Source of the DNA: Octopus sinensis
Taxonomy: Eukaryota
Reading direction: 5' to 3'
Assembly: GCF_006345805.1 (NCBI RefSeq)
Contig: NC_043013.1
Location: 23,684,001-23,748,000, forward strand
DNA length: 64,000 bases
Translations under genes and position numbers: made by a program
Part shown: one piece after another, positions 4,277 to 62,702 of the stretch
Position numbering within the stretch: the stretch's first letter is position 1
Layout: every line of letters starts with the position of its first letter
Notes under the pieces: model-generated
What the model was told of the DNA's origin: nothing
What the model saw: the letters and a program-made list of their open reading frames with translations, nothing else
Database searches by the model: none

Positions 4277-4351
4277 ATGAAAGCATTTCTCATATTTTGT
4301 CTGATGTTCCTGACTTTGTGTTGTAATGTGCAACCAGATCCATTGCCCCAG
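4277..4351 (+). CDS. Gene A exon 1: signal peptide [25 protein letters not shown]
   Basis: ACCATGA start context, basic residue plus hydrophobic core, strong donor CAG|gtaaga, phase 0. Confidence 0.75.
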
Positions 4352-7300
4352 GTAAGATGTTGAGATGCGAAACTATTTGCTGCTCATCGTTTCTAAAGCT
4401 TTTCTGCAATCATTTGTGTCAGTTTATTAATTTTTTTTTTTACAGCATTTAATTTAGATTCATGAGGTTTTGGAGAGTCTCGTTTGGCTGTCCGAATCGC
4501 TACGGAGACAGCCTATCTGCACTGCAGCCTTAAATAAGATACATGCACCTCGCTTCCTCACTTCATCATCATCATCCCCCTCCTCCTCCTCCTCATCATC
4601 ATCATCACTATCGTCGTAATCATCATCATCATCATCATCATCATCGTCATCATCAGCAACAGCAACAGTAGCAGCAGCGCCATCAGTATCTTCCGTGGAT
4701 GGTGAAGTCAGTGGTTGGAATGCCACTTTAGATGCCCTGGCATTTAGCAACCACCACTGACCCCTGTCCTCCGTTGTGCCCAGAAAAGCCGCGGGACTGA
4801 GACTGACCTGAACCCATCCATCCGGCTATAAACATCAGGAAAAGTTTTGAATCATTTCTGTAGTTAATAGTGTTTTCTTAATACATAAATCTTGGCCGGA
4901 CCCTCTTTTGACTATAACTGGATAAGAGATAATCTTCCGCAGTCTTATTTTGTTCGAGGAACATTATCTAACAAAAGGAAAAAAAAAGTTCCTTGTTGTG
5001 AGAAATAGCTATTGGTCATAAGGTTCACTATCGTAACTCATAATTATGAGAGGTTAGCCTCACACACAGACATCGGTTCTTGAGTGAATCGAATGTTTTT
5101 ATTCATTTGTATTTACACAAGTAACTTGAAATTTCACACTAACGTAAATTGTAGATTTCCGACTGAAAATAGCTTTGGTTCGGTTCTAAATGAATAATAA
5201 TAAATATTTCTCACACAGACACAAAATATAAACTCGTATATAGTATTGTATATCTACTCAGTGGCTCTTACTTCAGTAAGAACGGTGAATTGTTTACTTC
5301 CCTGAGGATGTCTGTTAAGGCTGAAACATGTCCTCGGTTATCTCTCCTACTTGTCAAAATAATTAAAAAATGATTCGAAATTTTTCGTTATTAAGGTAAT
5401 GTTGTCTTGTCTCCATATAAATATTTCTAATTAGATTTGTGACGTTTACTTTATTAAATCCGATAACATTGCGCTCACTACTTTATTGTGACATCGTTAT
5501 TCCACCACACTTTACTTTTTTCTTTTCTGTTCATTTTGCTCATTAAAAAGATTAGTTTGAACATTCAAGTTTCCTCCATCGTCTGCTCCGCATACCATTC
5601 CTTACAGGATTCACTAATCAGTTACAACTGTCTCGACTGTAGAGAAGAATTGTTTTATAGTTGCCATTGTGTTATTGTTTAATTGCCTTCAATTCGAATA
5701 ACTGAAACTAATTGCTTTTTTTTTTGTCTCTAGAAAATTCCTTCTGAAAATTTCTCTTGCCACACAATGAAAGATGCTCTCCATCGTGGTAAGTCTAACA
5801 TATTCAGTAATTTAACTTCAATATTGGTAAATTATGTTGCCTTCTCCAGTTTCATAATGTGAGGAAATAACGAGAGACACTTTTATTTTCAAATTTTTGT
5901 CGAAATTCCGTTTTTTGTTCCAAATAATCTAAATTCTCTGCTACCAAAGAACTTTGTGTAACAATTTATTGTTGAATCATAGCATGACAGCGTATGTTGT
6001 CAAGGTCAAAAATGGTCAAACTCATATTTTATTTTTAATTATCAGAATATCATTTCATTGAATATAGAATTCTTTCAGATTATTTGGACATCAAATATGT
6101 CCCAGGGTTCTTGGGGCGATAGGGAGCGGGAGTTATCTAATTGTATGTATGGACCATATAATATAATAAAATGCGTGGACCATATAATATAATAAAATGC
6201 GTGGACCATAAAATATATATATATAAAAGAACAAAAATGGTGTTCAAAATTCACAACAGCTGTTTCGACATCATTTTATTGATGCAATCTTAGATTCATG
6301 TTGTAACCTAAAAACACACCAATAAAAGTGCTGCCGAAACAGCTGTTGGGAATTTTGAACCTCATTTGTATTCTTTTTATACATGCGCGACATTTGGAAC
6401 CATTCCTGGATTGGATCTACAATTTATATTGGATTAGGTATCGATGTATATATGTGTCTGCCTGTATGTATATATGTGTGTGTATATATACATACATACA
6501 TACAGTACACTACCAATAAATGACAACTATGAGTTGCTTCAACACACTATAGGCTCAGTACTAAGTACCCAGCCAAACCTGGCGCCCTACATGTTGATAT
6601 GCCTTGCTTCTAATGAAGCTTGCAACTGATCTCTCTCTCCCTCTCCCTCTCTCTCTCTCTCTCTATATATATATATATATATGAATTTATGTGTAAATGT
6701 AATATGTGACAATTATTCGGTAGCCATGATATAACTCCGAGTTTCGGATGTCGGGGTGGAAATGCACGCCGCCATCTCTTCAGTTATCCGGCCATCGGAG
6801 TTTTATCATAGCTACCGAATAATTGTCACATATTACATTTACAGATAAATTCCTCCTTATAATATCGAGGTCTCTTTTATTCATTTGTTGTCTTACCATT
6901 TCTATCAATATATATATATATATATATATGTGTGTGTGTGCGTGCGTGTATGTGTGTGTGTGTGTGTGGTGTGTGTGTGTGTGTGTGAAGGCGCATGGCT
7001 CAGTGGTTAGAGCGTCGAGCTTACGATCGTGAGGTGAGTTCAATTCCCGGACCGGGCTGCGTGTTGTGTTCTTGAGCAAGACACTTTATTTTTGATGTTG
7101 CTCCAGTTCAGTCAGCTGTAGAAATGAGTTGCTATGTCACAGGTGTCAAGTTGTATCAGCCTTTGCCTTTCCCTTGGATAACACTGGTGGCGTGGAGAGG
7201 GGAGGCTGGCATGCATGGGCGACTGCCGGTCTTCCATAAAAACAACCTTGCCTCAGACTTGTGACCGGGAGAGTAACTTTCTAGGTGCAATCCCATGGTC

Positions 7301-62300: not shown

Positions 62301-62702
62301 ATATATATTATATATATATATAACACAAATATATATATATATATATATAATATATATATATATATATATATATATATATATAATGTAGGATAAATTTTTT
62401 TCGAAAACAATTCTATCAATGGCCAGCATTATTATATATATATATATATTATATATATATATATATATACACATATATATATATAATAATGCTGGCCATA
62501 TATATATATATACATGCATACATACGTACATAAATATATCTTAAAAAATTAAATATCAAATGAGTTAGTGGGAAAGAAATGAATAAAGTTTTTAAGATTT
62601 ACATTATAGTAAATGTACTCACAAATTTCGGATATAAGTCAATATAAGAGAACCCTTTGCCGTACCGAATCCGGCAGTAATCATCCGGGGTCGTATATGT
62701 TG
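50237..62702 (-). CDS. Gene B (partial; 5' part lies beyond the window): paralogous ADAMTS-like protein, Dis-TSP1-CysRich(N)-PAN-CysRich(C). complement join(62623-62702,62167-62271,57824-57987,56931-56991,55782-55923,52146-52379,50237-50388)
   Basis: Seven GT-AG exons with lengths 80,105,164,61,142,234,152 and phases identical to gene A exons 13-18 and 20; no stops; conserved Cys and Trp. Confidence 0.9.
52146..52379 (-). CDS. Gene B exon: single PAN/Apple domain
   Basis: [16 protein letters not shown]...[20 protein letters not shown]...KCDLS...WDHYE; 234 nt, phase 1/1. Confidence 0.92.
53175..54390 (+). mobile_element. mariner transposon copy 2 (same family): both TIRs and TA duplications, internal deletion of about 77 bp
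   Basis: TA|TTGGGTTGGCAACTAAG ... CTTAGTTGCCAACCCAA|TA; deletion bounded by CTGGC microhomology relative to copy 1. Confidence 0.95.
55782..55923 (-). CDS. Gene B exon: cysteine-rich N-half (SCNTRE...RQRASERC...)
   Basis: ttttacag| and G|gtaagt; homolog of gene A exon 17. Confidence 0.9.
56931..56991 (-). CDS. Gene B exon: TSP1 C-terminal part ([20 protein letters not shown])
   Basis: ttttcag| and |gtacgt; homolog of gene A exon 16. Confidence 0.9.
57824..57987 (-). CDS. Gene B exon: TSP1 ([30 protein letters not shown])
   Basis: ttttag| and AA|gtaagt; homolog of gene A exon 15. Confidence 0.93.
58110..59785 (-). mobile_element. L1/Tx1-type ORF1-only retroelement (HAL1-like) with CCHC zinc knuckle, frameshifted
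   Basis: [20 protein letters not shown], an N-terminal TYAGA motif and a basic/acidic tail; pyrimidine-rich 3' UTR with AATAAA; no endonuclease or RT. Confidence 0.7.
60222..60616 (-). mobile_element. Helitron H1 copy 4
   Basis: Same termini; colinear with copy 1. Confidence 0.85.
62167..62271 (-). CDS. Gene B exon: disintegrin-like (KCGIISC...NGLSCGPQM)
   Basis: cttcag| and |gtgagt; homolog of gene A exon 14. Confidence 0.9.
62623..62702 (-). CDS. Gene B exon: disintegrin-like ([27 protein letters not shown])
   Basis: ccacag| and |gtgagt; homolog of gene A exon 13. Confidence 0.88.

Follow-up and report, generated by a model that had tools for sequence, protein, structure and literature searches.

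A tail-to-tail pair of ADAMTS-like genes with two PAN exons each in Octopus sinensis

ADAMTS proteases are defined by a signal peptide, a pro-region, a catalytic domain of M12B type, a disintegrin-like domain, a thrombospondin type 1 repeat (TSR), a Cys-rich domain and a spacer (Kelwick et al., 2015; PMC4448532). In canonical members the Cys-rich domain has about 100 amino acids (aa) with 10 conserved Cys, followed by a Cys-free spacer of 103-160 aa; the accessory modules listed for the family are TSRs, GON-1, CUB, PLAC and mucin modules, and PAN is not among them (PMC4448532). Here we describe two genes from a 64,000-nucleotide stretch of the Octopus sinensis genome (contig NC_043013.1, positions 23,684,001 to 23,748,000; hereafter the window, numbered from its first base) that combine the catalytic, disintegrin-like and TSR domains of an ADAMTS with two PAN domains. 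We read them, with a probability of about 0.8, as convergent, anciently duplicated genes of a small ADAMTS-like family with two PAN exons each; one of the PAN pairs was probably reshaped by gene conversion, and the products would act as secreted proteases with a PAN-based exosite.

Gene models and PAN exons

The two homologous genes lie tail-to-tail, gene A on the plus strand and gene B on the minus strand, as recovered by tblastn of the B side against the A side, which returned colinear coding blocks on opposite strands; all matches beyond the conserved coding blocks were repeat-derived. Eight consecutive coding exons are common to both genes (80, 105, 164, 61, 142, 234, 234 and 152 nt), with identical phases, AG/GT at every boundary and an open frame of 1172 nt in each gene, and the 390 aa that the two proteins have in common show 47% identity. 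An earlier note on this DNA had proposed a tail-to-tail paralogue pair with mirrored exon lengths and phases, strongly diverged proteins and introns without visible likeness. All of this is borne out: the mirrored series is one 234-nt exon longer than proposed, and the only likeness between A and B introns comes from dispersed repeats. The limits given for the pair were also correct, position 4277 being the gene A ATG and 62702 the first base of the gene B 80-nt exon. The 152-nt exon, by contrast, is not the last of the series as had been thought but the penultimate one, since a tiny, stop-bearing coding exon follows it in both genes (45905-45934 in A, 48280-48248 in B). These terminal exons came from RefSeq models; comparing the A and B downstream regions for a conserved terminal exon yielded only a palindrome. 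The 2313 bp between the two stop codons (45935-48247) hold the convergent 3' ends, a repeat fragment and that 182-bp palindrome (47825-48006). We found no third family member within the 64-kb window, and A and B are a real but ordinary diverged paralogue pair.

Gene A (4277-45934, plus strand) corresponds to O. sinensis XP_029646979.1, "ADAMTS 1", whose 812 aa are exactly its spliced translation. Its 20 coding exons lie at 4277-4351, 5734-5788, 8732-8780, 10521-10758, 11751-11865, 12441-12598, 15001-15087, 15521-15618, 16251-16376, 20604-20732, 22759-22865, 23503-23582, 23693-23797, 33234-33397, 35979-36039, 37800-37941, 40387-40620, 42873-43106, 44584-44735 and 45905-45934; every intron is GT-AG, and 812 of 812 aa were placed without mismatch. 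The protein begins with a hydrophobic leader, recognised by inspection, and has about 190 aa ahead of the catalytic domain, which matches Reprolysin at aa 194-384 (54.7 bits; Pfam cutoff 20.8). The zinc site HELAHNLGIPHD, split by an intron, and the Met-turn GLMGS could be read directly from exons 9 and 10 (16251-20732, plus strand). The 164- and 61-nt exons (33234-36039, plus strand) encode a central TSR (Pfam TSP_1, E 6.2e-10) that aligns to TSR1 of ADAMTS13. Two PAN exons of 234 nt and phase 1-1 follow on the same strand, A1 at 40387-40620 and A2 at 42873-43106, each identified by Pfam PAN_1 and its splice sites, and A2 also by its likeness to A1. The 152-nt exon (44584-44735, plus strand), with a GTAAGT donor at its end, encodes a 51-aa Cys module (CEVxC...PDGxxC...WRCxxGxC), and the last exon encodes KFENQTFSG and the stop codon (45932-45934). 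At aa 754 (44586-44588) O. sinensis has an extra, non-conserved Cys (DCPQNG, against DFPQNG in Octopus bimaculoides), which makes the Cys count of its terminal module odd.

The 3' part of gene B (48248-62702, minus strand) matches exactly aa 418-817 of O. sinensis XP_029646989.1, "ADAMTS 7-like", 817 aa. Its nine coding exons in the window are, in coding order, 62702-62623, 62271-62167, 57987-57824, 56991-56931, 55923-55782, 54864-54631, 52379-52146, 50388-50237 and 48280-48248, the last encoding NFGTKGYANV and the stop codon (48250-48248); its remaining exons, past position 64000, encode the first 416 aa and supply the first base of codon 417. The earlier note had made catalytic exons 5' of this part a test of its reading, and they are present: the full RefSeq model has a Reprolysin domain at aa 200-391 (38.6 bits; cutoff 20.8), encoded outside the window.

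Gene B also has two PAN exons, both 234 nt and phase 1-1. The second, B2 (52146-52379, minus strand), was identified by tblastn, splice sites and Pfam PAN_1. The first, B1 (54631-54864, minus strand), had been missed in the earlier note, which counted two PANs in A and one in B. B1 matches the gene A PANs in tblastn (E 2.6e-23), has canonical splice sites (AG/AACTTC ... CACCAG/gtgagt) and is included in both the O. sinensis and the O. bimaculoides models. Pfam PAN_1 finds two stretches in each protein (A, 1.1e-20, 73.7 bits; B, 3.2e-19, 69.0 bits; cutoff 21.4), and each of the 234-nt exons has a four-Cys core and a score well over the threshold. A and B thus do not differ in PAN number, contrary to what had been claimed.

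Domain architecture and family spread

The order of domains is putative signal peptide, putative prodomain, M12B catalytic, disintegrin-like, TSR1, 47-aa linker, PAN, PAN, 51-aa Cys module and short tail. Pfam recognises Reprolysin, TSP_1 and two PAN_1 stretches in A, in B and in a third member, C, found outside the window; the TSP_1 match reaches 38.2 bits in A and 24.7 in B (cutoff 21.6), and the central TSR is therefore present in both. Searched against PDB, a family profile recovered ADAMTS13 MDTCS (metalloprotease, disintegrin-like, TSR, Cys-rich and spacer; 6qig) at 1.1e-28, ADAMTS5 (2rjq) at 2.7e-24 and ADAMTS1 at 6e-14, with an alignment that covers the catalytic, disintegrin-like and TSR1 domains and ends at TSR1. 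The disintegrin-like domain can be aligned with the D domains of both ADAMTS13 and ADAMTS5, and its Pfam ADAMTS_CR_2 match is weak. The zinc site of gene A, with its Met-turn, has the full HExxHxxGxxHD consensus; in B and C the motif is HEIAHGIDIPHD (gene B aa 336-347), in which Asp replaces the consensus Gly of HExxHxxGxxH.

Beyond TSR1 the octopus proteins depart from the canonical plan. The 47-aa linker has one invariant Cys and the 51-aa C-terminal module five, so that 6 invariant Cys stand outside the PANs against the 10 of a canonical Cys-rich domain, and the protein ends 9-10 aa beyond the Cys module, which leaves no Cys-free spacer. Pfam gave no match to Pep_M12B_propep, ADAMTS_CR_3 or ADAMTS_spacer1 in A, B or C. 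Compared with an ADAMTS of ADAMTS4-type organisation, A and B have a putative leader and pro-region, share the M12B domain and, in an alignment over profile positions 226-562, the disintegrin-like domain and TSR1, but differ in having no spacer, 6 rather than 10 Cys and two interposed PANs; compared with known PAN/apple domains (PF00024, PAN_1), the octopus exons match above threshold but sit inside the ancillary region of a metalloprotease. Because the catalytic, disintegrin-like and TSR domains are present and the Cys-rich domain and spacer are not, we call these proteins ADAMTS-like, a truncated variant with a PAN pair from which the distal half of the Cys-rich domain and the canonical spacer are absent.

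The 51-aa module resembles the Cys module of Caenorhabditis elegans ADT-1 type (Pfam Adt-1-like, PF25379), aligning to positions ~29-72 of 76 at 19.6-26.8 bits, under the cutoff of 31.8 and with the first third of PF25379 unmatched; its match to ADAMTS_CR_2 is likewise weak and subthreshold. From the spacing of Cys, linker and terminal module may be the halves of one Cys-rich subdomain split by the PANs. Searches of PAN-deleted constructs against Pfam and PDB did not establish the two as one Cys-rich domain, and the alignment of a PAN-deleted profile went no further than TSR1.

A search of 1.84 billion representative proteins with a profile built from the four PAN exons recovered two proteins of ~811 aa, both of which have two PAN stretches; a single PAN exon used in a word-index homologue search gave no match. 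By cluster look-up, A ("ADAMTS 1") groups O. bimaculoides XP_014774988.1, O. sinensis XP_029646979.1 and O. vulgaris CAI9735287.1, and B ("ADAMTS 7-like" or "ADAMTS 13") groups O. bimaculoides XP_014774985.1 and XP_014774985.2 with O. sinensis XP_029646989.1; between O. sinensis and O. bimaculoides the orthologues have 94% identity for A and 93% for B. Word-index searches with gene A alone and with an A/B/C alignment returned three clusters only, those of A, B and C. Member C (P0157) has 816 aa and the same architecture, both PANs included; it lies intronless on contigs of ~2.85 kb in three read-set assemblies, among them SRR27666061, and hence represents an mRNA, which contains the two PANs. 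Another assembly includes a related fragment (P0008). The members are 43% (A-B), 45% (B-C) and 40% (A-C) identical, and a tree of the catalytic, disintegrin-like and TSR1 segments, with those of human ADAMTS13 and ADAMTS5 as the root, joins B to C, as ((B,C),A), in 85-87% of 500 bootstraps, in agreement with the Gly-to-Asp change shared by B and C.

In the searches run, relatives came from Octopus species and one set of transcript contigs only, which supports the earlier proposal of a lineage-specific family. As for the PANs, those closest by profile score are found among the repeats in large multi-PAN proteins (Octopus, Argonauta and an annelid). Among the best 150 PAN matches, the family aside, HExxH occurs only in a Photobacterium damselae protein (WP_340642378.1), which has a HExxH metalloprotease region and five PAN repeats with good scores to the profile of the octopus PANs. 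Protease and PAN are combined independently in this protein.

The existing models of A and B are visibly inconsistent in O. bimaculoides and O. vulgaris, which is relevant to annotators. The O. vulgaris gene A model lacks the in-frame 105-nt exon. In the current O. bimaculoides annotation gene B is split in two, a protease of 569 aa and an 'uncharacterized' PAN protein of 295 aa, and an older 811-aa model of the same gene leaves out the 142-nt exon and runs on past the last donor.

History and age of the pair

In A, B and C alike the PANs agree in position and phase, so PAN acquisition predates the duplication, as the earlier note had proposed. What the note had added, a doubling in gene A from a one-PAN state shared with B, finds no support, as B and C each carry two strongly diverged PANs, with ~36-42% identity inside one protein: B1 and B2 are 40% identical, and the two PANs within each C-type protein ~35-38%. 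A1 and A2 stand apart, with 88.9% DNA identity, 83% protein identity, synonymous divergence (dS) of 0.25 and non-synonymous divergence (dN) of 0.095. Their likeness is confined to a homogenised tract of 301 bp at 90.4% identity (40329-40629, plus strand; partner 42815-43115), in which the exon is flanked by 58 bp of intron upstream and by 9 bp downstream, with 2 mismatches in the first 95 bp. This is the only likeness other than microsatellites between the two intron-exon regions; the remaining flanking introns cannot be aligned, although repeats as low as 72-76% identity are easily detected elsewhere in the window. In a neighbour-joining tree of PANs A1 and A2 group together with 99.7% bootstrap, and within that group A1 pairs with A1 and A2 with A2 between O. 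sinensis and O. bimaculoides, which places the homogenisation before the split of these species.

First-position PANs (B1, C1) differ cleanly from second-position PANs (B2, C2) at nine alignment columns, and both gene A PANs have the first-PAN state at 4-5 of the nine and the second-PAN state at none. A narrow tract combined with first-PAN residues in both A1 and A2 argues for homogenisation of an existing pair, and the pattern suggests concerted evolution by gene conversion, which fits it better than a doubling of one exon into two. We accordingly consider the likelier course to be that an ancestral pair of diverged PANs existed and that in gene A a short conversion tract later replaced the second PAN with sequence of the first. 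The symmetric, phase 1-1, 234-nt exons would be shuffled modules in place before A and B separated; the ancestor would have had two diverged PANs, types 1 and 2, which B and C retain; and in the A lineage the first would have overwritten the second before O. sinensis and O. bimaculoides diverged.

The strongest competitor, which we consider less likely, is an ancestor with one PAN whose exon doubled independently, long ago in the ancestor of B and C and more recently in A. Symmetric phase 1-1 exons duplicate easily, A1 and A2 are both of first-PAN type, and the topology ((B,C),A) makes the count of events equal to that of an ancestral pair followed by conversion; parsimony alone is thus undecisive. 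The deep nodes of the PAN tree receive only 13-46% support and do not resolve the question. The argument for conversion lies instead in the narrowness of the tract and in the distances: A1/A2 likeness ends ~60-110 bp upstream and ~10-20 bp downstream of the exon, in a window where repeats of 72-76% identity are detectable, and B2 resembles B1 or C1 (40-43%) no more than it does A1 or A2 (43-45%), the pattern to be expected from a split of the PAN types that preceded the divergence of A.

The duplication that produced A and B is old and its products are under purifying selection. Identity between the two ranges from 61% in TSR1 through 45-53% in the PANs to 34% in the linker; the proportion of synonymous differences (pS) is 0.84 and that of non-synonymous differences (pN) 0.38, and because synonymous sites are saturated dN/dS of A against B is not computable. 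A, B and C do not vary in their Cys framework. Saturated pS, a pN of 0.38 and the retention of all cysteines likewise support the earlier suggestion of an old, maintained family.

A second alternative, that A, B or both are decaying pseudogenes or non-catalytic ADAMTS-like proteins, has a low probability. It draws on the Asp in place of Gly in B and C, on the failure to detect a Pfam propeptide or a furin site and on the truncated ancillary region. All frames are nevertheless open, all splice sites canonical, pN far under pS and the Cys framework intact; gene A has the full zinc consensus and Met-turn, and the Asp variant, being common to B and C, has been maintained. Some points do weigh against our overall reading, beside the equal event count and the poorly supported deep nodes given above. 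By inspection there is no furin-type RX[KR]R site 5' of the catalytic domain, and the Asp in HEIAHGIDIPHD makes the activity of B and C uncertain. The homology of linker and C-terminal module to the ADAMTS Cys-rich domain is subthreshold only, an AlphaFold2 model built on the three-sequence alignment has a predicted local distance difference test score (pLDDT) of 34.6 and is unusable, and exon usage in A and B rests on RefSeq models, intact frames and conservation.

That B keeps an ancestral single PAN and A doubled it, the model of the earlier note, is hardly credible: A1 and A2, at 83% aa identity, are indeed far more alike than any other PAN pair, but two intact 234-nt B exons with canonical sites, the RefSeq models of two species and two PAN_1 stretches exclude it. 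Least probable of all, and rightly called unlikely before, is that the assembly created the mirror image from one gene, by inverted duplication or mis-join, which would account for the tail-to-tail symmetry and equal exon lengths but is excluded by the divergence of the copies (47% protein identity, saturated synonymous sites, introns unlike in length and content) and by separate O. bimaculoides orthologues at 94% and 93% identity.

Repeats around the genes and meaning of the family

The window is AT-rich (~36% GC) and abounds in microsatellites and transposon debris. The intron between B1 and B2, just downstream of the exon that had been missed (54864-54631), contains a mariner-type transposon remnant (53173-54350, plus strand), and a sister copy lies in the last intron of gene B (48684-49931); both match Pfam Transposase_1 (E 1.9e-22 and 4.6e-24) and they are 88-94% identical to each other. 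A degenerate third mariner fragment occupies ~36597-36947 (minus strand) in a gene A intron. Frameshifted reverse-transcriptase fragments with weak RVT_1 matches (25170-26454, plus strand; in the 9.4-kb intron of gene A) and a 217-aa open reading frame with a borderline CCHC zinc knuckle (58691-59344, minus strand; in a gene B intron) look like retroelement debris.

Several repeats are dispersed or inverted. Copies of a ~400-bp repeat, up to 95% identical, lie at 23061-23468, 60210-60617, 29884-30400 and 30661-30907; one stops 35 bp upstream of the 80-nt exon of gene A, a gene B intron contains another, and as all have the same orientation they are transposon copies rather than mirrored intron homology. 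The palindrome between the stop codons is near-perfect, with its centre at ~47912, and a second, hairpin-like inverted repeat lies at 45334-45516, just downstream of the gene A 152-nt exon; both may be foldback elements or miniature inverted-repeat transposable elements (MITEs). Gene A introns also contain direct repeats, 28071-29152 with 31178-32264 (94% over 1087 bp) and 13667-14323 with 16680-17313 (76% over ~650 bp), the latter coinciding with a strong G-over-C skew at 14-18 kb. A perfect (100%) tandem duplication of ~366 bp (33855-34221 and 34220-34586), in the intron between the 164- and 61-nt exons, is either very recent or an assembly artefact.

The sequences of A and B are already public as RefSeq models with automatic names. 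In the literature searched we found no paper on ADAMTS with PAN/apple modules, on these genes or citing their accessions, and nothing relevant on octopus ADAMTS or on the SRA run, and an ADAMTS domain variant with a PAN pair and no spacer appears to be undescribed there. The main outcome of our analysis is a correction, as the claimed difference in PAN number is absent, and the remaining interest is modest: the locus provides a clean, small case of exon-shuffled modules and exon-scale concerted evolution within one gene, and may be of use in studying how ADAMTS ancillary domains contribute to substrate choice and in annotating cephalopod genomes.

Judged by their sequences, the products of A and B are probably secreted metalloproteases. 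The catalytic domain of such a zinc metalloprotease would cleave extracellular protein substrates, and the PAN pair may supply a protein- or carbohydrate-binding exosite, the role played by the Cys-rich and spacer region in canonical ADAMTS. Tentatively, and at somewhat less than even odds, we suggest that these genes represent a cephalopod-restricted ADAMTS subfamily in which a shuffled PAN pair replaces the spacer exosite, the PANs of A evolve in concert by exon-scale conversion and B and C keep the Gly-to-Asp change. If this is true, a binding module that expanded locally would have served to rebuild the ancillary region of a protease, perhaps for an extracellular role specific to octopus.

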